From Podarcis melisellensis (taxonomy: Eukaryota), in the NCBI GenBank assembly GCA_964234715.1, contig OZ174278.1: 64,000 nt of DNA. The stretch is one strand, 5' to 3'. The notes under the pieces were generated by a model. That model had not been told where the DNA came from, did no database searches, and was given only the letters and a program-made list of their open reading frames with translations. This document shows positions 30,501-42,100 of this stretch, in pieces. Position 1 is the stretch's first letter, and every line of letters begins with the position of its first letter. The translations under genes were made by a program, and so were the position numbers.

Positions 30501-33145
30501 CCACAGAAATTTGATACAGTGAATAGTTCAGGAATTGAATTTGATATCATTAGTTCTGATAATTAAACAATAAAAGTTGCATTTCATTCTGGTTCGATAA
30601 TTTACGTTCAGCTGGTCTTTTAACAGGCTGCAGTGAAGCAGCTTTACATGTATAATGATGATGATGATGATGATGATGATGATGTCATCAACCTTTGTGT
30701 TGTTTTATAGGCCTATGACAATTTAAGTTTGAGCGACCATTTGCTGAGAGCAGTACTGAATCTTCTTCGAAGGGAAGTGTCTGAGCACGGGCGCCATTTG
30801 CAGCAATATTTCAACTTGTTTGTGATGTATGCCAACTTAGGTAATGTGATGTTTGTTTCACCCTAAAGGCTTTGTCCATGTTGTTCTGTCAGTGCACTTA
30901 CTTAATAGTCTTGACTCTTGCCCATTGAATGCTTAATGATGCGGCACAAATTGTTATTAATAGCTTAAATCAGTGGTTTTCAGCCTGTGCTCTGGGGATC
31001 CCTTAATGCAGGACAGTCTTCTCTGGAAGGCAGTTTACCCACCACTACCAGTTTTTCCATGATCCCACAGCTGCAAGGGAAAAGAGTGTTGGTTGGTTTT
31101 TCCCCAGAGCTATTCCTCAGCAGATAATTGATGCGTTCTTAATCTTGTTGAATCAGAAAGGTTTTGAGTGATTCTGGCTGGATTCTTGAAGGCATGGATT
31201 ATTGTATTCACAGTAAATGCCCATTTATGGATTTCCCAATGTGAACAGTTATCTGAATAGTTCAGTAGCTTAAATGTAGCTAAGTATGTATTCATTATTC
31301 TTCCTCTTTTTCCAACTTCCCTTTAGGTGTAGCAGAAAAAACACAGCTTTTAAAACTAAATGTACCTGCCACATTTATGCTTGTGGCACTGGACGAAGGC
31401 CCAGGTCCTCCAATCAAATACCAGTATGCTGAACTAGGCAAACTATATACTGTGGTGTCCCAGTTAATCCGCTGTTGCAATGTGTCATCACGTATGCAGT
31501 CTTCTATCAATGGTACTGTTAACCCTGGAACATTTAAACAGAATATATTTGTGATTAAATGTGTGTGGCAGATTATTATTCATCATAGCATCTCACTAAT
31601 CTTTTGTCTGTTACACTGGTCTGTGTTTACTTAAATATTTGGAAAAATTTCATATCATTAAAATACAGTAAGCTCACAACTTACACACGTTTAAGTTGTG
31701 CTCGTTCAGCTTTCCATGCTTGGCATTGTTTAAAAAAAGAAATTAGAAAGGAGATGGGCATTCAGGAGAAAAGACTTTGGCAATCCCACCTGCCATTGTA
31801 CCCAATGTGTTTTGACATTCTTGATTTATTTTAGGAATGTAACCTTCCATGTAAGTTGAGGATTTTCTGTATTACCAGAATTGTATGTGCAAAAGTTGGT
31901 TCTCTTAAATGTGTCTACATGTGACACAACCGTTCCATATTTTGGTAGTGCAAGTTAAGCCTATTCCAAGGGAAGTCTTAAAAAACCTTGTTTAATTGTA
32001 CAGGCTTTGATTTTTCACTAAGGAATACTACCAAACCCCATGTTTTACAAAACCAGCTGCAATGCTTTACAGTGATCATAACTGTTACATCAGAAGTTTA
32101 ATCTGCATCTGTCAGACTTGACCTAGGTGAATACTTATAGAATAGCAATTTTCATAACCGAACAAGAGACATTTCACATATATATGTAATGTACTTCACA
32201 TGTTCTGTGAAGTAATTAAAAAGATGACATTAAATAGTACCTTGTTGGTTTCTGTAGTTCAAATAAAAAATAATATAACAACATTTCTTTTTAGGTAATC
32301 CTCCACTTAGCAACCCTTACGGTGATACTAATTTATCACAGCCTATAATGGCACTTCAGCAGAATGTGGCAGACATCTTGTTTGTGCGAACTAGTTATGT
32401 GAAAAAAATAATTGAAGACTGCAGTAACTCAGAAGAGACCATCAAACTACTTCGCTTCTGCTGTTGGGAGAATCCTCAGTTTTCATCTACAGTCCTTAGT
32501 GAACTACTTTGGCAGGTAAAAAATGATTAAAATGACAGGAAAGGTGTGTTTTATTCAAGAGGTTGATGTGCAGAGGCTATTGTCCCTTGATTTTCACCCT
32601 CTTAGTCTTTAGAGTTGCAACAAGTAGTGGTTACTTCAAAAAAAGTCACCACCAGAGAAAATGAATGCTCTTTCAATGATAAAGCCTAATTTAACAGAAA
32701 TATTTCCTTGGCTTGTGGCGTTGAAACGAAAGCTCATTCATAATATAATACTGTACCCATCCAGTTATTCATAGCATGAATTCTCCTGTACTACACACTT
32801 AAATAATCATTAATTGCATGTTAATATGTTCCTCAAATTCCACTTTTTAAAGGTTGCATATTCATACACATATGAACTTCGACCGTACTTGGATCTCCTT
32901 CTGCAAATCTTGCTAATTGAGGACTCTTGGCAGACTCACAGGTTAGCTCTTGGGTTTTTGGGTTCTGCATTTTTTTGCATTAATAATGTGGTGCTTCTGT
33001 GTGAAAGTCTTTGTGATTGCTTCATGGAGACATAGCAGATTTTAGTTGCCTACTGGAAACAATAAAGTACCTTAAGCCGTATCCAAAGTGACTGTTACCA
33101 GAGCATATGGGGACTGCCAAATGGTTGTGTATTCTATATACCGTG

Positions 33146-33207
<62 letters not shown>

Positions 33208-36200
33208 TGATATATATGATAAATTAGCTAGCAAGGTTTTTGTGCAATTGTTACTTTAAATTAAATTATACAGATGAGTTTAGTTGTTAAAACTGTTAAG
33301 CTGTTAATTCCTTGGTTCAGCTATCTTCTCTGAGAATGCACTAGGTTGTTCTGGATAAAGCATTATTCTCTTCTCTGCTTCCCATCTGTTACATGGGGGT
33401 GATAATACTGGTGTACCTTCTTTGGCGATCACTCGTAGGCGAGTAAGATTGTCTTCCGTGAACACAGTCTTAACAGTGAGTCCATAAGTAACCGGAGGAG
33501 CCAATTCTGGATCCACACATCCTTCCACAGTGGGGACATAGGTTTCTGGGTGGACGTTGATCATGGTGGCATACTTTACCAGGGAGAAGACAAGAAGGAC
33601 TACTGAGATGAGGGGAAACTGTTTTGAGTACTTGGGAAAACTGCTATATAAACACTGAGCCTTATTAAATTGGTTGACTGTTCTGTTTTGTGTGAATCAA
33701 TCTGCTATAAAAATCATTCTGGCTTTGGATTTTTAATTTTATTTCTGCAGGGGAGTGGAGGGAGTTTATGGTAGAGAAACAGCAGCTGGTTTCAGGAAAG
33801 CTTAGGCAGAAATGGAGACCTGAGGTCACTTTGCATGGGCCCTAAAAAAAATTGTTAGACTATAATGGTGATTACCAAGTGAGAAAATGAACACATTCTG
33901 CATATTTAGATGTCACCCTTTTAGAAGAGGGTGTAAAGAAGTAAATAAAAAATATCACTGACAATTCTTCACAACTACTGGTACTCTGTAATGATACGGC
34001 AAGATCCTAGAACAGAGACATTCCATCTTGTTATGAGTAGAGGGAGCATGCATCTCCTAAGATTGTGTCTTACACCCACAGTTTTGCAAGTACAGACACT
34101 GATTATCTGGATCTGCTGGGTCTGAGCTTGTGCAACATTTTAATGCTAGCCCTTTATGATGCTGACATTTACATGCATGTTTATATGTGTGAAATTCTGA
34201 CTTCTTGATGTGTTTGGGATTCTCTTAGGATTCACAATGCACTTAAAGGAATTCCAGATGACCGGGATGGGCTATTTGATACCATTCAACGCTCTAAGAA
34301 TCATTATCAGAAAAGGGCTTACCAGTGTATAAAGTGTATGGTAGCTCTTTTCAGCAACTGTCCAGTAGCCTACCAGATTTTACAGGTAATTACTTTTACC
34401 TCAAAAAAAATTACTTTCTCTATTTTTCTAATGCTACGAAGAGAGGGACAGGACTGAGCCAAGTTTAGTTATAATAGAACTCTTTCTGCAGAGTCACTAA
34501 GATAAAGCCATGGTCTTGTACAGTGGTATCTCTGGTTACGTACTTAATTCGTTCCGGAGGTCCGTACTTAACCTGAAACTGTTCTTAACCTGAAGCACCA
34601 CTTTAGCTAATGGGGCCTCCTGTTGCTGCCGCGCCGCCAGACCCCGATTTCTGTTCTCATCCTGAAGCAAAGTTCTTAACCTGAAGCACTATTTCTGGGT
34701 TAGCGGAGTCTGTAACCTGAAGCGTATGTAACCTTAGGCGTATGTAACCTGAGGTACCACTGTATATTTTATCTAAATAAATTGGAGAAAACACCACCAA
34801 GAGCAAATGTCTATTCCCTCATAGAAATAAAATTAGAACAGAATTGTAGGATTGGAAGGGATTATCGAGTCAAACACCCTGCAATGGAGGTATCTCAACT
34901 AAAGCATCTATGACAAAATAGAACTGTAGGGACCTTACTGGAGTATTTTTTGTTTGCTTTGGTTTTTTGTTTTACAAAAACCTGCATTGGACTGAGGTGT
35001 GTTTAGAAGTAATTTTAAAATATTGAATGGCTTTTTTTTCATCTTTTCAGAGTAATGGAGATTTGAAGAGAAAGTGGACCTGGGCAGTAGAGTGGCTTGG
35101 AGATGAGCTTGAACGTAGGCCATACACTGGCAATCCACAGTATACATATAACAATTGGTCTCCTCCGGTCCAGAGTAATGAAACATCAAATGGCTACTTC
35201 CTAGAGAGATCACACAGTGCAAGAATGACCCTTGCAAAAGCTTGTGAGCTATGCCCAGAGGAGGTAAGGAGTGAATTTACAACTAACTTTGCTTTGGCAT
35301 TCTTTGGGAGACAAACAACTTGTTTCATAAAATTCCTGATAGAAATATATGTTGTTTCTAGCTTAGTGAGACTTCGGAACTCATAAGTAGGCAGGAGTTA
35401 AGCCCTCCACTGTACCAAGTGCCCCCAGTTATCACTGTGAGAGGCAAGGGAGTTTGAGCACTCCTCTGGCCACAGCCTCCAAACCTGTAATTCTTAATAT
35501 AGCAGCATCTACTTCTGATAGCTGTTACATAGTATAGGATTTAGAGAGGTGCCTGCAGAAGGGGTTGGCAGAAGCTGAATTTCCTTCTTGTTCCTTCTTA
35601 AAAAGAGCTTCTTCCAAGTGTCTGGGTATCCTGATTCATTTGGGGGCGGGAGAATCTGCCCAGATTTTTATTTTGGAGTTCCTCCCTTAGGCTCCATGTC
35701 ATAGCCAGCCATATATCAGGGTTGCCCTAACCCTCAAAAGAGGCTGGGATAGTGGGCAGTGATGTGATGGAAGCGGCAGGGTAGTCAGCTTCCACCCACA
35801 CATTCTGCAGGAATTTCTCTGGGTCCAATCAATTGCCAGAAGAAAATAAGGGCAAGGAATTTAAATGTGAAAAGTAGTTTATTTTTTTGTTTTAATGGGC
35901 AATTTTCATTTTTAGGAACCAGATGACCCAGATGCCCCTGATGAGCATGAGTCCTCTCCACCAGAAGATGCTCCATTGTATCCCCATTCGCCTGGTTCCC
36001 AGTATCAACAGGTAAGCAGAGAATTATCTTTAAAACATGTCAGTTCATTTTGGTATCCTTTGAACTTTTTGCTTCAGCTTTTAAAAAACTTATTGCCAGT
36101 TTTATTCCTTTTAGGACAAGGATAACTTTCACAAGAACATCATAGAATGTGATTCAGGTAGAGGGGCTCTTCCAGCAAACTGTAATTAGCAGACAGGGTG

Positions 36201-37505
36201 TTTTTTTAAGTATCTTGTGAATGCCCTCAGACACAACCATTATATGGGAACAATTATCTAACTTTTTTCTCTGTGAGCCAGCAAGCCAACTTGAATCAGC
36301 TCACAGGTGCATCCAGAGAAAAACTAAATTCCCCCAATAGGACATGTCCATTGATGCTTTGAAGACCACTTTAGAAAACAACCTATGCATTGTAAAATGC
36401 CCAAAATTTCACTTAAGTTTTGCACACAGTGATCTGCTAATAGAAGTTTCTGAACCAGCATTGGAAGTCTGATTCTGCCCTCCTGTAGTTCATGTATAAC
36501 ACCATGTGACTTAAGTTGCATGTATGCATATCTCTTAAAAGTTAAGTGCCTTTGTAAATGTAGTGCTAACTCCAGAAAGCTAAAATTGTAATTATCTTGC
36601 ATTACCTTTGTAAGTCATACATAACCAGTATTTGTTCCCTTTCCTAAAATAATTAATTCTATATCCTTAATCTGTTAATTTCCTTTCCTGCTCATTTCCC
36701 TTCATCTTGCTTTCTTTATCGATGTGTTCAGCAGAGCAGTTGGTAAGTGATATAGACCCAATCTCCTCAAAGTTGAAACACGTTTAACCACCAGCTCCCT
36801 TATTTGTTAGTGTGTGGTGTCTTCACTTTCTCACAAGAGCTGGCTTTTTTCACCTCCTAACATGCACAATGGCTATATTTTAAGTCCAATTTTAGGTTCA
36901 TAGTTGACCCAACTTCACATTACACAAAGGTACACGAATGTTTTACATCTGCCAGTTTAGGTGTGTTAACAGTTAAAACAAACATATTTGATGATAATCA
37001 CCTCAAGTCATTTTATTAAGTTTGACACAAGAAATATACTGTCCCTTTGGAAGAAAGGCCATTCACAATGATCACTTCCTGCTTCTGTGTACTAATTAAA
37101 ACTTTCCTCCCCACCATTCCATTTCTGAAGATTTGTTATGAGGACCTTCACATAAAGCTTCAGCTTTTGCATGAAGTTGGAATTAATTAACTGTAACCTT
37201 GACCTTTCAATTTCAGTGCAAATTTATCTGTTCTATTTTTAGTTGGCGGTAAGTGTGAGTAGCTCTCTGGTTGTAATTTAAAAATATAAATTATTGCTTA
37301 CCCAGTTCCCTGAGCTACTTTTTTGGGGAAATACAGAAGTTATTCTTAACATGTGTTTTGTCTCTTCCAGAATAACCATGTGCATGGACAACCATATACA
37401 GGCCCAGCAGCACATCATATGAACAACCCTCAGCGAACTGGCCAACGAGCACAAGAAAATTATGAAGGCAGTGAAGAGGTTTCACCGCCTCAGACGAAAG
37501 AATAG
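280..37505 (+). CDS. USP9X: Ubiquitin carboxyl-terminal hydrolase FAF-X (USP9X), 5'-partial; 38 coding exons, 6889 coding nt in window
   Basis: Exons spliced by hand at GT-AG sites give one open frame from [17 protein letters not shown] to [13 protein letters not shown] Cys box [18 protein letters not shown] (Cys codon 22805-22807) and His box [13 protein letters not shown] (His codon 28157-28159). Peptides recognised as USP9X. Confidence 0.98.
615..753 (+). CDS. USP9X: USP9X exon 9 equivalent, 139 nt
   Basis: acag|G TTG TTG CAA...ATG GCA|gtaagt; [16 protein letters not shown]. Confidence 0.95.
1060..1710. mobile_element. Cluster of degenerate short hAT-derived MITEs (GGGGAACC... / TGGGA(A/G)TTGTAGT family)
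   Basis: Three related ~110-150 bp units at about 1066-1200, 1350-1460 and 1595-1710, each with ccagcatg and most with gttgtagt-type motifs. Confidence 0.55.
2015..2167 (+). CDS. USP9X: USP9X exon 10 equivalent, 153 nt
   Basis: ttag|GAG TGG ATT...GCA CAG|gtaggg; [22 protein letters not shown]. Confidence 0.95.
3295..3399 (+). CDS. USP9X: USP9X exon 11 equivalent, 105 nt
   Basis: caag|GCA GGA AAA CAT...TTC AAG|gtaagc; [22 protein letters not shown]. Confidence 0.95.
3890..4275 (+). mobile_element. CR1 LINE 3' fragment
   Basis: Typical CR1 3' motifs: gatgaccaccaatttggatgattttaaaagaggagtaggcaaattcatggagga. A related fragment lies at about 20100-20240. Confidence 0.65.
4686..4892 (+). CDS. USP9X: USP9X exon 12 equivalent, 207 nt
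   Basis: ctag|GCA AGT TGG...TCT CAG|gtaaat; [25 protein letters not shown]. Confidence 0.95.
5330..5626. mobile_element. hAT (Charlie-like) non-autonomous DNA transposon/MITE
   Basis: TIRs CACGGGTGTCAAAC / GTTTGACACCCCTG; perfect 8-bp TSD GCTTAGAG (5322-5329, 5627-5634). Confidence 0.9.
6084..6220 (+). CDS. USP9X: USP9X exon 13 equivalent, 137 nt
   Basis: taag|GAT CGA GAT...TTG AG|gtgaga; [18 protein letters not shown]. Confidence 0.95.
7047..7180 (+). CDS. USP9X: USP9X exon 14 equivalent, 134 nt
   Basis: gcag|T CAA ACT CAG...AAA G|gtgagt; [19 protein letters not shown]. Confidence 0.95.
7775..7862 (+). CDS. USP9X: USP9X exon 15 equivalent, 88 nt
   Basis: tcag|AG CAT GGA...CTA CG|gttggt; [26 protein letters not shown]. 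Confidence 0.93.
9331..9537. mobile_element. Tc1/mariner-type MITE (short copy)
   Basis: TIRs CCGTATTTTTCGCTC / GAGCGAAAAATACGG with TA on both sides; same family as 24509-24927. Confidence 0.9.
9702..10044 (+). CDS. USP9X: USP9X exon 16 equivalent, 343 nt
   Basis: ctag|A TTT TTA CTG...TGG AGG|gtaagt; [19 protein letters not shown]. Confidence 0.95.
11400..12200 (+). mobile_element. L2-clade LINE 3' fragment (degenerate ORF2 C-terminus)
   Basis: Encodes [15 protein letters not shown] and [26 protein letters not shown], typical of L2 ORF2 ends. Confidence 0.75.
12924..13019 (+). CDS. USP9X: USP9X exon 17 equivalent, 96 nt
   Basis: ttag|GTT GTA ATT...AAT CAG|gtaaaa; [29 protein letters not shown]. 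Confidence 0.95.
13390..13601 (+). CDS. USP9X: USP9X exon 18 equivalent, 212 nt
   Basis: gtag|GTA GTA ATC CAT...TCA AG|gtttgt; [20 protein letters not shown]. Confidence 0.95.
14161..14401 (+). CDS. USP9X: USP9X exon 19 equivalent, 241 nt (ubiquitin-like domain region)
   Basis: tcag|A GCT TTT CGT...AAA ACA|gtaagt; [28 protein letters not shown]. Confidence 0.95.
14629..14778 (+). CDS. USP9X: USP9X exon 20 equivalent, 150 nt
   Basis: ccag|CTA ATT ACA...GGA GTT|gtaagt; [24 protein letters not shown]. Confidence 0.95.
14878..14998 (+). CDS. USP9X: USP9X exon 21 equivalent, 121 nt
   Basis: ttag|ATC ATG TCA...CCA G|gtaaaa; [19 protein letters not shown]. Confidence 0.95.
15485..15615 (+). CDS. 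USP9X: USP9X exon 22 equivalent, 131 nt
   Basis: ccag|AT AAC ACT...ACA GAG|gtttgt; [18 protein letters not shown]. Confidence 0.95.
15714..15925. mobile_element. Tc1/mariner (pogo/Tigger-like) MITE, degenerate
   Basis: TA|CAGTGGTACCTC ... GAGGTGTGACTG|TA. Confidence 0.75.
16117..16395 (+). CDS. USP9X: USP9X exon 23 equivalent, 279 nt
   Basis: gcag|GTA GTT TAT...TCA CAG|gtaatg; VVYALLMPA...[11 protein letters not shown]. Confidence 0.95.
16597..16722 (+). CDS. USP9X: USP9X exon 24 equivalent, 126 nt
   Basis: ccag|ATC AAC CAA...GAT GAG|gttagt; [17 protein letters not shown]. Confidence 0.95.
17265..17390 (+). CDS. USP9X: USP9X exon 25 equivalent, 126 nt
   Basis: tcag|GCT TCA AAA...GAG AAG|gtaaga; [24 protein letters not shown]. 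Confidence 0.95.
18247..18413 (+). CDS. USP9X: USP9X exon 26 equivalent, 167 nt
   Basis: acag|ACA AAT GCA...AGC AA|gtaagt; [26 protein letters not shown]. Confidence 0.95.
19283..19391 (+). CDS. USP9X: USP9X exon 27 equivalent, 109 nt
   Basis: ccag|A ACT GTT CGT...TTA GGG|gtaagg; [20 protein letters not shown]. Confidence 0.95.
19477..19540. repeat. Perfect 32-bp tandem duplication
   Basis: (AGCTTAGTTAACAAATAATACTTGAAATACAG)x2. Confidence 0.95.
20786..20932 (+). CDS. USP9X: USP9X exon 28 equivalent, 147 nt
   Basis: acag|AGT ACT GCA...ATT AGG|gtaagt; [25 protein letters not shown]. Confidence 0.95.
21131..21277 (+). CDS. USP9X: USP9X exon 29 equivalent, 147 nt
   Basis: ttag|GAT GAA GTG...ATT AAA|gtaagt; [27 protein letters not shown]. 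Confidence 0.95.
21955..22260 (+). mobile_element. L2-like LINE 3' remnant
   Basis: Encodes [15 protein letters not shown], typical of L2 ORF2 end, followed by a T-rich tail. Confidence 0.6.
22342..22564 (+). CDS. USP9X: USP9X exon 30 equivalent, 223 nt
   Basis: tcag|GAG TTA ATA...ACT A|gtaagt; [18 protein letters not shown]. Confidence 0.95.
22713..22933 (+). CDS. USP9X: USP9X exon 31 equivalent, 221 nt; catalytic Cys box
   Basis: ctag|CT TGT GAA...AAC GAG|gtaaca; [23 protein letters not shown]. Confidence 0.97.
24221..24411 (+). CDS. USP9X: USP9X exon 32 equivalent, 191 nt
   Basis: aaag|AGC AAT GTT...TTC AG|gtaaat; [13 protein letters not shown]...RGFWKQFR. Confidence 0.95.
24509..24927. 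mobile_element. Tc1/mariner-type MITE (long copy, GC-rich interior)
   Basis: TIRs CCGTATTTTTCGCCC / GGGCGAAAAATACGG, TA TSD; ends nearly identical to 9331-9537. Confidence 0.9.
25021..25209 (+). mobile_element. tRNA-derived squamate SINE (Squam-type)
   Basis: tRNA-like head (tagctgaggggtaagagca box A; ggtttgatccc box B 25070-25080) and 3' tail gactcagtataaggcagcttcctgtgttcc. Confidence 0.75.
25856..26029 (+). CDS. USP9X: USP9X exon 33 equivalent, 174 nt
   Basis: ctag|A CTC TGG GGT...CAT AG|gtaagt; [21 protein letters not shown]. Confidence 0.95.
27239..27380 (+). CDS. USP9X: USP9X exon 34 equivalent, 142 nt
   Basis: atag|G TAC GAA TGT...AAG AAG|gtaact; [18 protein letters not shown]...CEKCNKK. 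Confidence 0.95.
27491..27578. mobile_element. Short hAT-derived MITE
   Basis: TIRs CAGGCATGGCCAAACTTGG / CCAAGTTTGGCCGTGCCTG; internal TGGGAGTTGTAGT. Confidence 0.75.
27857..28607 (+). CDS. USP9X: USP9X exon 35 equivalent, 751 nt; catalytic His box
   Basis: ttag|GTT GAT ACA...CCA G|gttagt; [31 protein letters not shown]. Confidence 0.97.
29163..29286 (+). CDS. USP9X: USP9X exon 36 equivalent, 124 nt
   Basis: ttag|GA CAG GAT CAT...GAC TG|gtatat; [22 protein letters not shown]. Confidence 0.94.
29582..29807 (+). CDS. USP9X: USP9X exon 37 equivalent, 226 nt
   Basis: ccag|G TAT GAT GCT...AGT CAG|gtatgc; [18 protein letters not shown]. Confidence 0.95.
30655..30684. repeat. (ATG/GAT)n microsatellite
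   Basis: About 10 ATG units. Confidence 0.95.
30711..30840 (+). CDS. USP9X: USP9X exon 38 equivalent, 130 nt
   Basis: atag|GCC TAT GAC...TTA G|gtaatg; [29 protein letters not shown]. Confidence 0.95.
31327..31512 (+). CDS. USP9X: USP9X exon 39 equivalent, 186 nt
   Basis: ttag|GT GTA GCA...AAT G|gtactg; [28 protein letters not shown]. Confidence 0.95.
32295..32515 (+). CDS. USP9X: USP9X exon 40 equivalent, 221 nt
   Basis: ttag|GT AAT CCT...TGG CAG|gtaaaa; [10 protein letters not shown]...SELLWQ. Confidence 0.95.
32853..32941 (+). CDS. USP9X: USP9X exon 41 equivalent, 89 nt
   Basis: aaag|GTT GCA TAT...CAC AG|gttagc; [18 protein letters not shown]. Confidence 0.95.
33146..33205. repeat. Compound (TA)n(GA)n microsatellite
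   Basis: tatata...agagag. Confidence 0.95.
34229..34385 (+). CDS. USP9X: USP9X exon 42 equivalent, 157 nt
   Basis: ttag|G ATT CAC AAT...TTA CAG|gtaatt; [23 protein letters not shown]. Confidence 0.95.
34521..34762. mobile_element. Tc1/mariner (pogo/Tigger-like) MITE
   Basis: TA|CAGTGGTATCTCTGGTTAC ... GTAACCTGAGGTACCACTG|TA; internal aacctgaag repeats; same family as 46872-47059 and 50241-50410. Confidence 0.9.
35051..35263 (+). CDS. USP9X: USP9X exon 43 equivalent, 213 nt
   Basis: tcag|AGT AAT GGA...GAG GAG|gtaagg; [23 protein letters not shown]. Confidence 0.95.
35916..36011 (+). CDS. USP9X: USP9X exon 44 equivalent, 96 nt
   Basis: ttag|GAA CCA GAT...CAA CAG|gtaagc; [32 protein letters not shown]. 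Confidence 0.95.
36732..36742 (+). other. USP9X: Candidate alternative USP9X microexon (11 nt; 8 nt from the second CAG acceptor)
   Basis: About 100 nt with no AG (36629-36729), pyrimidine-rich, then ttcag|CAG|AGCAGTTG|gtaagt with a consensus donor. No transcript evidence available. Confidence 0.55.
37371..37505 (+). CDS. USP9X: USP9X last coding exon (45 equivalent), 135 nt to TAG
   Basis: ccag|AAT AAC CAT...AAA GAA TAG; [44 protein letters not shown]. Confidence 0.95.
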
Positions 37506-39120
37506 TGGAAATGCACATAATTAACTTGCCCCATCAAGACTGTGCACCCAGGCCTTACAGTCCAACTTTTCTCTGTGTCTGGNNNNNNNNNNNNNNNNNN
37601 NNNNNNNNNNNNNNNNNNNNNNNNNNNNNNNNNNNNNNNNNNNNNNNNNNNNNNNNNNNNNNNNNNNNNNNNNNNNNNNNNNNNNNNNNNNNNNNNNNNN
37701 NNNNNNNNNNNNNNNNNNNNNNNNNNNNNNNNNNNNNNNNNNNNNNNNNNNNNNNNNNNNNNNNNNNNNNATTCTTAAGCAAGAAACATTTTTTTGTCTT
37801 GATGAGACTCACAGATCTACAACAATTAATTTCTTGATATATCCGCTGCGCTCTACAACCAGTGTTGCCTGCCTAATGGCAGTTGGATCAACTTCTTTCC
37901 CCCAAAAAAGTAAGCCTCTCCATGTCAACCAGAAAAATAGTTTCATGTTAATTCTTTGCCACTGGAGTCAATTTTACTATGAGCAACGTAATGACTGGTA
38001 ACCTTTTAATTATTTGGTTGATGTGGAAAATTGGTGATGTAACATTGTTTCTAGGTCTTTTTTCATTGCCTTTTTCATTCTGGTATTAGGTTAATCACTT
38101 TGAAGCTATAGTTAAGCTGTAACATTTAGCATGGCTTCACACCAGGTTAGTGTAGCCAGTGAGGAAAGAAAAATTACAGTTGTCCCAGAGTGACAACTGT
38201 GTTGTTCAGAGCCTATTCTTCTGCCACCTAGAATATAAAACAGGGAGGGGAGGGTTGGGCAATGTGACAAACAGGTGGTTTTCAGTTGCACATATGTTCC
38301 TCACATCTGATGTTTGACAGTTTTGTCTCTGGGTGGGATAAAAGAACACTTAGTTTTCAGTAATAGGAAATTAAAAGATTTAAAACAAATATGCAAATTT
38401 TTGCTATGCCAGGATGCCTGGAGCATAATAGACTGTATTTGGTGTGCTTGTTTTGTTTCTTTGGTAGAGCTTATTTGATAAACTTCTAACACTTTCCTTT
38501 CTACTGCATTGCAGTGAAGTGGAAGTCAACAAAATCACACAATACTTGTGAGTGCCACTGCACCAAGTTAACTTGCTGGTTTTCTGCTCGTTCACAATTC
38601 TACTTGAAAACAAGAATTGAATCTTAGCTCTTTGTCCATGATAAGAGAAATCAAAACCTTAGAAGCAGAGTTTGATTATTAAAAAACAAACAAACTACTG
38701 GTTAGTCAAATACAAAACTGAGGTATCTCTATTCCAGAGTAAACATTTGTTTAAGGACTTCAAGGAAGACATCAGTAAATACTGTATTTAAATTAAAATT
38801 GGTAACTTGAATGTGTGTAATTATTTTGGAATCTGTCGAAAAACCAAATACCCCTGCAAAACAGATACAGCCCACCCTATACTATTTAAATATTTGCTGT
38901 TTTATTTTATAGAAATTATTTTGCTGAATTCACAAATAGAATTTGATTTAAGAAGACCATTTTTGTCCTGTGGTGTGTGTGTGGTTTTTTTTTTTAAACA
39001 GACTGCACAGGTAGTTGAATTCTGTGCACTATACCGAATTCTGGAACTAAAGTCGCATTGAGAATTGGTGAACAGAAATTTGACCCTTGACAAGAATAAA
39101 AAAGGAAAACTGTAATAGTT
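37506..39120 (+). other. USP9X: USP9X 3' UTR (proximal part; may extend to about 40.9 kb)
   Basis: AT-rich sequence after the stop in which I recognise no repeats. AATAAA at 39095-39100. The exact end is not determinable. Confidence 0.6.
37583..37770. other. Assembly gap (188 N) within the USP9X 3' UTR
   Basis: Run of n characters. Confidence 1.
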
Positions 39121-42100
39121 TCTTAATGTGACTATCTTGTACTTTTTGTATGTTTTATATATACATATATATTTAATGAGCACAAGCTTGAAGGTATTTT
39201 ATACAATTGAGTTAATACAAAAATGCTGCTTATCAAACTGAGGATTTATAGTTGAACAAAGTGAGAAACTCACAAGTGCGTTCTTTTGCATTTAGTGTAA
39301 TGAGATAGTCTTAAACCATTTTTAAATATTCTATGTAGCAGCGATCACTTTACCCTTCCAGATTTTCTCTAGTATTCATGTTAATTGTTATGTTTCTAAC
39401 AGCAGTTAATTGGATTGGTTGACAACGTTTGAGTGAAACATTCCCCATGTACGTGGGTATGTTTAGTGTTGACTTAAATCAAAATATTAGCCTGTTTTGT
39501 ATTAGAGCTGCAACAGTTCATATTTCCTTAGACCAGTAATTATTGTTAAAAATGTTTTTTCAAAGACTATCTTTCTATACAGGAACATGGAACTTGTTAC
39601 TTTGGCCTTGGAAAAATGATTAGTGTCAAGTGATTGTGAAAATACTTTTTCTTTTTCTTTCTTTTTTAAACTTACTTTCACAAGGCTATGACAAAACCCT
39701 CCTGGAGATAGTTTTCAGACAACTACTTAGGAGGTATTGCGGGTTATCTTTTCCCCCTGGAAGAGAGACTCCTGAGACTATTGCCTCTTTAAAATTAATG
39801 TGTAGCAGAAACCTGAAAAATCCTTTTCTTCCTTCTTGGCAAAACGTCTCATTTATTCATTTTAAGTGAAAATGTTCTGAATAATAATTAATGCATGCTT
39901 CTGTCAGAGTTTTGGCAGCAGTCACTTTAAAGCTGTAATGTAATACCTCAATATGAATGGCACACATTAAAACAAGTCCTCAAAGTGCCTAAAGGTTTAA
40001 TTTTACTCTTCTGCTAATTATTGAATCCTAATTTTTGTTTGTAACAGCTAATGAGAAATCCCTGTCTTCCATAAAAGCAATCCATCCAACAGTAATCCTA
40101 CATTTTTCCTAATCATTTGACATTAAATATATAGAAACTGATCACCCGTAGGAAAAGTTTTTAGTGTGTTTGTATCAGACTGTGTTTGTGTAAATAGCTT
40201 CATTTGCTTTACCAGAAGCAGTTCTTTGTGCAAATGATTTTTTGCCACTGACTTCAGTGAGTAAACCTTAACATTCTGTTTTTGTGTTAGCGCTGCTAAA
40301 TCACTCTAGTTAAGGAGGTATGCATGGCTACCAACTTGCTGGGTCTTCATTACATATTGTCACTTTGGGGGAGCTTTTGAATGCTGAAAGTAATGGGAGC
40401 CTCAGTTTTATTTAAAAACTTAATAGATTTTAGTGGTTGTGGTATGTCTGCAGTGTCCACTGAAGATTCAAAAAGCAAAAGAGAAATAAAAAGAATCCAA
40501 AATGGAATTTTAAACCTCATGATTCTTAAGCCATGTTATGTCTTTTTAAAAGGACCGTGAATTTTAAAGAATTAGCTTTAGAAACACAAATATAATGATT
40601 AAATTTGCCTCCCAGTTGGATTTAAGTTGTAACTAGCAAACCTTTTCCAGGCAGTGTATTAAACTCTGGGTGTCATGTCATTACTAAGTTACAAAGGAAA
40701 GTAAAGAGATGGGAGTAGAATAAGTATGCTGTTGTCCCTTTAGCTACACATTTGTATAGAAGCGAATGTTCATCACCACAGTGGTATTATCGCAAAGTGC
40801 AATTCCATTTTGAACTGAATGCAAAATATTAATTTGTTGTGGTGTCCATCTTTTCTAGAAGGACGTTTCCTAAGTGTTTCCTTCATACCTCCCTTGCATT
40901 TCGGTGCAGCTTTCCTGGGACAATTTTCATAAGTTGTTCAAGAGACACCCCCCCCCAAAAAAAGTTCTGTATTATTCATAAACATGCTGGTAACACTAGC
41001 AAATATTATATGGCTAAACATTTACATTTGTTTTTCTTTCTCTGTTCAAGCAAACTATGGTAGTATGTATTTTAAAAAAACACAAAAAACCCAGATCTTC
41101 CCAAAAAGGGAAATGTAGGATGCTAGAGAAAGTTATAGGAAAAAAGCAGTTGGGTGGGGGGGGGGGAGACAAGCACTCTTCTTGAATGGAGATTATGGAA
41201 GATAACAGAATATTGTGGTTGGCATAGTAACGGCTCATCATGACTGTAGATGCATCACCTCATTTACAGTAGATTAGTAGATCTTAGGAACCACTCATTA
41301 AAGGAAATGGGCAGAAAAGAACTTCCCTGCTCTCCCTCCTACATCTCCAAATCACCTTTCCTGAGGGTTGAAAAACCTGGGTGAGTTATGACGTTGGGAG
41401 CTACGGGAAAGGGGAGAATTGCCCAAGATTTTGAAGTGTCTTCAGCAAAGATGCACTTGCACGAGGTTCTGCTTCCTGAGTTGGGACAATCTCCCCATCC
41501 CACTGTGCCATAGCCCACCCACTCAAGGAGAAAAGAGTGTTGGAGAGTGTAGGGAGAAGGACAATCCCCTTTTGTTGTTTTCCTTCCACAAGCAATTCTA
41601 AGGATCCAGCCCGTACTTTTCAGGGAAGCCCATTCACACATGTGGAAATAAGCTGCCATGTGTTAATCACACACTATAAACGTGTGTGAACTCATCTTTT
41701 GTCTCTACCATTTTCCTGTGGCTAGTAGGAGACTCTTGTTGCTTGAGTCCTTATTCGTTGAAAGCCCTAAATGGACAGGGAAGCATTTTATTGTGTTAAA
41801 CTATTGATAGTTAAAATGGGATGAAGCCCATATGCTCCTTTAATTTATTTTACACTAAGCATGGAAGAGGAGCTTGACTAGTGTCTAGAATTTTCTGTTC
41901 GATTTTGAGAACTGCATGCAGCATGAGCAGGAAGGAAAATAATTCTTTGTGACTAGATGCTTGTGCAAACATTGTTCCCTCTCCTATCTTCTCATTGTGA
42001 GTAGCTTGCTATCAGATGTCTAGTGAAATATTAAATTCCAAAGGATTTATTTGCTATATTGTAGAACTGCAGCTGGGCTTTATCTGTGTTAATTGTGAAA

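Follow-up and report, generated by a model that had tools for sequence, protein, structure and literature searches.

USP9X is a dosage-sensitive deubiquitinase, variants of which cause neurodevelopmental disorders, and its last coding exon encodes a conserved 44-residue tail. A 64,000-nucleotide (nt) stretch of Podarcis melisellensis DNA (contig OZ174278.1 of assembly GCA_964234715.1; hereafter the window) that contains the 3′ part of this gene raises the question of whether the intron ahead of that exon carries a second, far shorter exon able to remove the tail, as an earlier reading of the DNA (the original prediction) had proposed. The locus answers with the anatomy of a compact splice site cluster, with a reading-frame consequence that can be read base by base, and with deep conservation confined to the island that bears the splice signals. 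We consider it very likely that the candidate is a genuine splicing element under selection, and probable that it is a regulated cassette microexon that would yield a tail-less USP9X. Gene identity as USP9X/FAF-X was taken from source names (‘ubiquitin carboxyl-terminal hydrolase FAF-X’) and from PF12030 matches among the relatives of a neighbouring exon.

The site reads ttcag/CAG/AGCAGTTG/gtaagt, with slashes marking the possible boundaries, and its tandem acceptor AGs at 36730-31 and 36733-34 delimit an 11-nt and an 8-nt exon (Table 1). Upstream, an AG at 36627-28 is followed by none until the one at 36730-31. The intervening pyrimidine-rich tract contains UGC at 36689-91 and 36708-10 (−43 and −24 relative to the exon) and a branch-point-like CTGTTAAT, with its A at 36678, that we regard as the putative branch point of the candidate. 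At the sequence level, an 11- or 8-nt exon with CAG acceptors and a donor falls within the 3–27 nt of cassette microexons. The UGC used to recognize SRRM4-regulated microexons, one lying no more than about 50 nt ahead of the 3′ splice site, is present. Both the 21-nt core of the element, from acceptor −4 to donor +6, and the tract upstream of it are single-copy within the window.

What inclusion would do to the protein follows from the flanking exons. The penultimate exon encodes 32 amino acids, is in phase 0 at both ends, terminates in ...SQYQQ and has the donor gtaagc; the last exon is preceded by ccag, and its first A (37371) is available to complete a stop codon. Reading the junctions by eye, the 11-nt form adds Q-S-S and the 8-nt form S-S, and in both cases the TG at 36741-42 joins A37371 to make TGA across the final junction, so that the last 44 residues are replaced by QSS or SS. 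A stop that lies on the last exon junction, or no more than about 50 nt from it, escapes nonsense-mediated mRNA decay (NMD; the 50-55-nt rule). Here the last exon supplies, with its first base, the third position of the TGA; as the codon straddles the final junction, junction-dependent NMD should not act on the mRNA. Direct reading thereby bears out the structural part of the original prediction: the claimed AG-free zone at 36629-36729 does lack AG, the tandem acceptors and the TTG/gtaagt donor at 36743 are in place, the flanking exons end in YQQ in phase 0 and encode NNHV...TKE as described, and both the arithmetic of the stop at the last junction and the logic of NMD escape are sound.

We asked how often such an arrangement occurs in the window by scanning both strands for an AG with GTRAGT 3–30 nt downstream of it, a combination present 58 times on each strand. 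Requiring a pyrimidine-rich acceptor and 50 nt or more free of AG leaves 2 pairs on the plus strand, the candidate among them, and 0 on the minus strand; when the AG-free length is raised to 90 nt or more, only the candidate remains on the plus strand. Compared with the 8 real neighbouring USP9X exons, the candidate has the longest AG-free zone (101 nt versus 29–77 nt), the second highest pyrimidine content between positions −42 and −3, and a donor that matches the consensus as well as theirs do. Comparable sites must arise by chance many times per genome, which makes conservation the decisive test. Two look-alikes in the window serve as internal controls. A 16-nt acceptor–donor pair at 31835-31850 (tttattttag/.../gtaagt), in an upstream USP9X intron and with an AG-free zone of 59 nt, shows no conservation against a bird-like contig (L015) and is probably a chance pseudo-exon; a 6-nt pair at 37243-48 has kept its donor and not its acceptor. 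As neither look-alike has a conserved acceptor–donor pairing, conservation of such motifs is not automatic.

Orthologous introns came from two word searches, and all compared contigs are genomic. The search with the last-exon open reading frame (ORF) led to a short ORF, P0001, on ten Logan contigs (L001-L010); the other search, which used the ORF that surrounds the penultimate exon, returned many genomic ORFs, from which the DNA of L015, L016-L018, L019, L025, L026 and L020-L023 was taken. Mammal-like ORFs with tails of the CPEEVKKATSV type were also among those returned. The source run of L016, SRR8362948, is a Ceylon junglefowl run (bioRxiv 10.1101/2023.07.18.549606), which identifies the group of L001-L010 and L016-L018 as Gallus. 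L015 and L025 align with L016 across the whole intron at 76–83% and look like other birds. L019 aligns to the birds in islands only; a small tree built from exons and the 3′ untranslated region (3′UTR) places it in an intermediate position, with the birds on one side and the window on the other, and it appears to represent a deeper, sauropsid-like lineage. Our five-lineage comparison comprises the lizard window, L019, L015, L025 and L016; the orthologous last introns of the latter four are 1392–1840 nt long. A metagenome scan with a 20-mer gave no contig beyond one already in the comparison.

Conservation of the acceptor–donor pair, on which the original prediction had staked its case beforehand, is strong in these sauropsids: 21 of 21 core positions are identical in the five lineages, and the same 21/21 holds in L001-L010. 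Only one invariant run in the five-way exon–intron–exon alignment, coding exons included, is longer than the core. Invariance here starts at acceptor −4 and stops at donor +6, boundaries that fit splice signals and not a generic enhancer, and all four AGs of the acceptor cluster are invariant across the five lineages. When the window is compared by blastn with each of the four other lineages, the exons are recovered together with only one stretch of the last intron, 36651-36870; over 30.7-37.6 kb, a region of 8 exons and 7 introns, this island is the only non-exonic match to L015. In 50-nt bins of the five-way alignment, 68–80% of the positions are invariant in the island, 79–92% in the exons and about 20% in the rest of the intron. 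The three bird-like sequences, whose introns can be aligned throughout, have a background of 60% invariant columns, against which the core (21/21) has a P of about 2e-5 and the upstream 100 nt (86/100) a P of about 1e-8, and the three longest invariant runs of their intron all lie inside the island.

The signals around the core are kept as well. The AG-free zone persists in the five lineages at 101–123 nt, and UGC stands at −24/−25 in 5/5 lineages, with a second UGC at −43 in the window and at −50/−51 in the other four. Toward the 5′ part of the zone, all five lineages have CTG(C/T)TAAT, a plausible distal branch point. The candidate thus displays the strong conservation of exon and flanking intron that is expected of microexons.

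Table 1. Features of the USP9X 3′ region in the window (position 1 is the first letter of the 64-kb stretch)
Feature	Position	Strand	Description
Penultimate coding exon of USP9X	35916..36011	+	Reading frame and splice sites read directly
Last intron, host of the candidate	36012..37370	+	1359 nt, bounded by penultimate and last exons
AG-free tract 5′ of acceptor	36629..36729	+	101 nt, 73% pyrimidine
Invariant core, acceptor −4 through exon to donor +6	36728..36748	+	21 nt identical in window, L019, L015, L025, L016
Candidate microexon, 11-nt form	36732..36742	+	Splice sites read directly
Candidate microexon, 8-nt form	36735..36742	+	Via second AG of tandem acceptor; read directly
Donor GTAAGT	36743..36748	+	TTG/gtaagt, 7/9 matches to CAG/GTAAGT; invariant in five lineages
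Second, weaker conserved block	36812..36853	+	Blastn islands and alignment; GTGTTCACTT...TGGC.TTT.TCAC, 70–110 nt downstream of microexon
UGCAUG (RBFOX-type motif)	37168..37173	+	436 nt downstream of microexon
Last exon, coding part	37371..37505	+	44 amino acids (NNHV...TKE), TAG at 37503-05

With moderate confidence, we read the element as a genuine, selectively maintained alternative cassette microexon of 11 or 8 nt, at least as old as the lizard–bird split, whose inclusion would make a tail-less USP9X. The original prediction had interpreted the site as a regulated, possibly neural switch to a truncated isoform; of that interpretation, the conserved pair, the exon, the AG-free tract, the UGC at −24 and the stop logic stand.

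Several findings weigh against our reading. Typical neural microexons preserve the reading frame (PMC6948980) and the candidate does not: preservation is typical, if not strictly defining, of SRRM4 microexons, and neither the 11-nt nor the 8-nt form has it. The last introns of three teleost-like loci (L020, L022 and L023; 87, 474 and 90 nt) lack the element and any donor-like site, so that the element is either not vertebrate-wide or was lost in teleosts. A mammal-like copy (L011-L014) has a 938-nt last intron in which blastn and a pattern count found no intact motif; these contigs have a C-terminal peptide of mammalian type as well as a mammal-like repeat, and may be a Y-type copy. The two word searches returned only genomic ORFs or canonical spliced and read-through fragments, none of them ending in QSS or SS. 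Perfect invariance itself leaves no substitutions by which coding, splicing and other constraints could be separated. Finally, the supplementary tables of MicroExonator (mouse) and of Head et al. 2021 (human tumours), which are possibly incomplete or coordinates-only, have no USP9X entry. A search of 8 million full texts yielded no paper that connects USP9X with a microexon, with the targets of SRRM4 or RBFOX, or with an exon in the last intron, and a 2015 review of USP9X mentions no splice isoforms (PMC4427618). A USP9X microexon may already sit in an automatic gene model (RefSeq/Ensembl).

As a cassette microexon, the element would be expected to work as follows. The exon would be defined jointly by a distal branch point, placed at the 5′ end of the AG-free tract of some 100 nt, by the UC-rich tract with its UGC motifs and by the strong donor, and the spliceosome would recognize the acceptor–donor pair. 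From this step on we are inferring, as regards inclusion of the exon, the factors and the tissue involved, and a change of function in the tail-less protein. An exon this small lies well below the size at which ordinary exon definition works, so an activator is probably required for its inclusion. Activation by SRRM3/4-type factors would fit the conserved UGC at −24, SRRM4 being known to activate microexons through UGC-bearing pyrimidine tracts of this kind, and an input from RBFOX would fit the conserved downstream UGCAUG, a predicted site. Inclusion would then shift the frame into the TGA, and the protein would end in QSS (or SS) in place of its conserved 44-residue tail.

The RBFOX-type motif has a mixed record. 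The original prediction had pointed to TGCATG at 36517 and at 37168, and both copies are present; the one at 37168 has a counterpart in the five lineages, and the position of the other is not kept. The conserved copy lies inside GCTTT(T)GCATG at +436 to +520 in 5/5 lineages and, in the birds, within the fourth longest invariant run of the intron. Further downstream, a 5′-splice-site-like GGTAAGTG at window 37248-37255 is also kept in the five lineages, 516–619 nt from the microexon and 80–105 nt after the conserved UC-rich/UGCAUG block. Given this distance of 80–105 nt to a second conserved donor-like site, the UGCAUG may serve another element. The acceptor that would accompany GGTAAGTG is not conserved, standing 6 nt upstream in the lizard and 18–20 nt upstream in L019 and L015, with none obvious in L025 and L016; the site might mark a poison exon, bind U1 within the intron or belong to a decoy arrangement.

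The last of these options touches the main rival to our reading, in which the conserved pair is a decoy, or regulatory pseudo-exon. Its recognition would control the removal of the last intron (by detention or retention) or 3′-end processing, and hence the dose of USP9X, and exon-containing mRNA would be rare or incidental. The conservation pattern shows constraint on splice signals and is silent on the product, which accommodates a decoy, and the persistence of GGTAAGTG without a conserved acceptor hints at intronic U1-binding elements. Published decoy and poison exons break the reading frame, as this exon does. The position of the stop tells against a decoy: at the last junction it would give a stable, translatable mRNA, so that inclusion would not be unproductive. 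The present sequence analysis also gave no sign that this short intron is retained, and the upstream UGC in a UC-rich setting matches the architecture of activated microexons. We consider a decoy role unlikely, if not markedly so.

The boldest extension of the cassette-microexon reading would make the element an amniote-wide switch, mammals included, that is enriched in neurons and driven by SRRM3/4 and RBFOX. The stable tail-less USP9X that it produced would lack a short linear motif conserved since bony fishes. The C-terminal truncation seen in X-linked intellectual disability would then copy, in every cell, an isoform whose normal occurrence is restricted. We regard this version as doubtful.

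The same acceptor cluster could also be used without creating a stop. Choice of the AG at 36735-36 or 36738-39 would insert between YQQ and NNHV a microexon of 6 nt (Q-L) or 3 nt (L). Splicing downstream of a long AG-free tract normally takes the first AG, and a competing AG normally lies within a few bases of that one, which disfavours these forms; the 6-nt form would in addition require a GAG acceptor, the weakest context. On the other side, all four AGs of the cluster are invariant, and frame-preserving microexons are the usual kind (PMC6948980). An in-frame insertion strikes us as quite improbable.

Least probable of all, to a degree that we would call very low, is that the island has nothing to do with splicing and only happens to look like an exon, being instead a conserved non-coding element of another kind, for instance an enhancer or a structured RNA. 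In its favour, the general constraint on USP9X is high, and the 3′UTR is 86% identical between the lizard and the bird-like contig. The invariance is however bounded by splice signals on the sense strand, the AG-free property is kept in five lineages, and the sequence is single-copy, with no covariation and no Rfam match (the search of the last intron returned no family). Folding of the single sequence was not significantly more stable than that of shuffled versions (z = −1.7). In an RNAalifold prediction, part of the second conserved block, downstream of the candidate (Table 1), pairs with CATCTTGC (UGC) on the upstream side, leaving the microexon in a loop; this pairing has no compensatory changes, and its covariation term is unfavourable. 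The one ORF that overlies the island is antisense, in L015, and takes in only about 15 conserved residues.

Other origins were set aside. A repeat or transposon source is ruled out by the single-copy sequence in the window, and recursive splicing by the reasoning that it serves very long introns, this one being 1.36 kb. An alternative last exon was rejected as well: the sole downstream A(A/T)TAAA in the window lies at +363, at a position that is not conserved.

The exons on either side are themselves well conserved in sauropsids. The penultimate exon has 89–92% nucleotide identity to 4/4 sauropsid orthologues, and the coding part of the last exon 91–94%. The first 24 residues of the C-terminal tail are 87.5% identical in the teleost-like loci, which indicates that the 44-residue tail is itself constrained. 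One teleost-like locus has a long Pro/Thr/Gly-rich insertion within the tail, C-terminal to a conserved motif. The teleost-like USP9X loci are very compact at their 3′ end, as seen at L020:6101-6189, L023:9154-9245 and L022:7683-8158. In the window, directly after the stop codon, the 3′UTR contains a run of 188 N at 37583-37770; from there on (window 37771-39386) it has 86% identity to L015 over about 1.67 kb. Concatenated exons and the first 830 nt of this UTR differ by ~7.4% between the lizard and birds, an exon-like constraint on a non-coding region.

If our reading holds, a regulated tail-less enzyme would give the C-terminal tail of USP9X a physiological role that can be tested, and the element, being defined to the base and conserved in chicken, is directly testable.

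Several known systems resemble parts of this arrangement. Like the decoy exons of detained introns, the candidate lies cryptically inside an intron, is highly conserved and would break the frame; unlike with them, its inclusion would not trigger NMD, and its host intron is not known to be retained. It shares with stop-creating exons that escape NMD the lack of any exon junction downstream of the TGA, and differs from them in that its stop would be assembled from two exons by the microexon. As in RBFOX-regulated exons, a downstream UGCAUG is kept in the five lineages, although at 436-520 nt it is beyond the usual proximal enhancer position.

Human genetics offers a parallel at the protein level. 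According to reviews, the pathogenic USP9X variants transmitted by males, among them a truncating one, are concentrated in the C-terminal part of the protein, and variants of this part did not restore axon growth and neuronal migration (PMC4427618, PMC7725775). The truncating variant of the MRX99 family is reported to remove the extreme C terminus of USP9X, as inclusion of the candidate would (PMC7725775, PMC4427618); the variant is a human germline mutation, whereas the candidate would be a natural isoform in sauropsids.

The closest likeness is to the microexons regulated by SRRM4/nSR100 (and SRRM3), such as TAF1 microexon 34′, which measure 3–27 nt and have a strong donor and very highly conserved flanking intron (PMC6948980). 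SRRM4-dependent inclusion of the TAF1 exon requires UGCs at −18 and −29 (PMC6948980), and the UGCs in the pyrimidine tract of the candidate lie at −24 and −43. Many neural microexons are vertebrate-wide, whereas the candidate was not found in the three teleost-like loci. It also differs in that its inclusion would not preserve the frame and would create a stop at the last junction; if so used, the candidate would belong to a rare type of microexon that, instead of inserting residues, builds an NMD-proof stop across the last junction.

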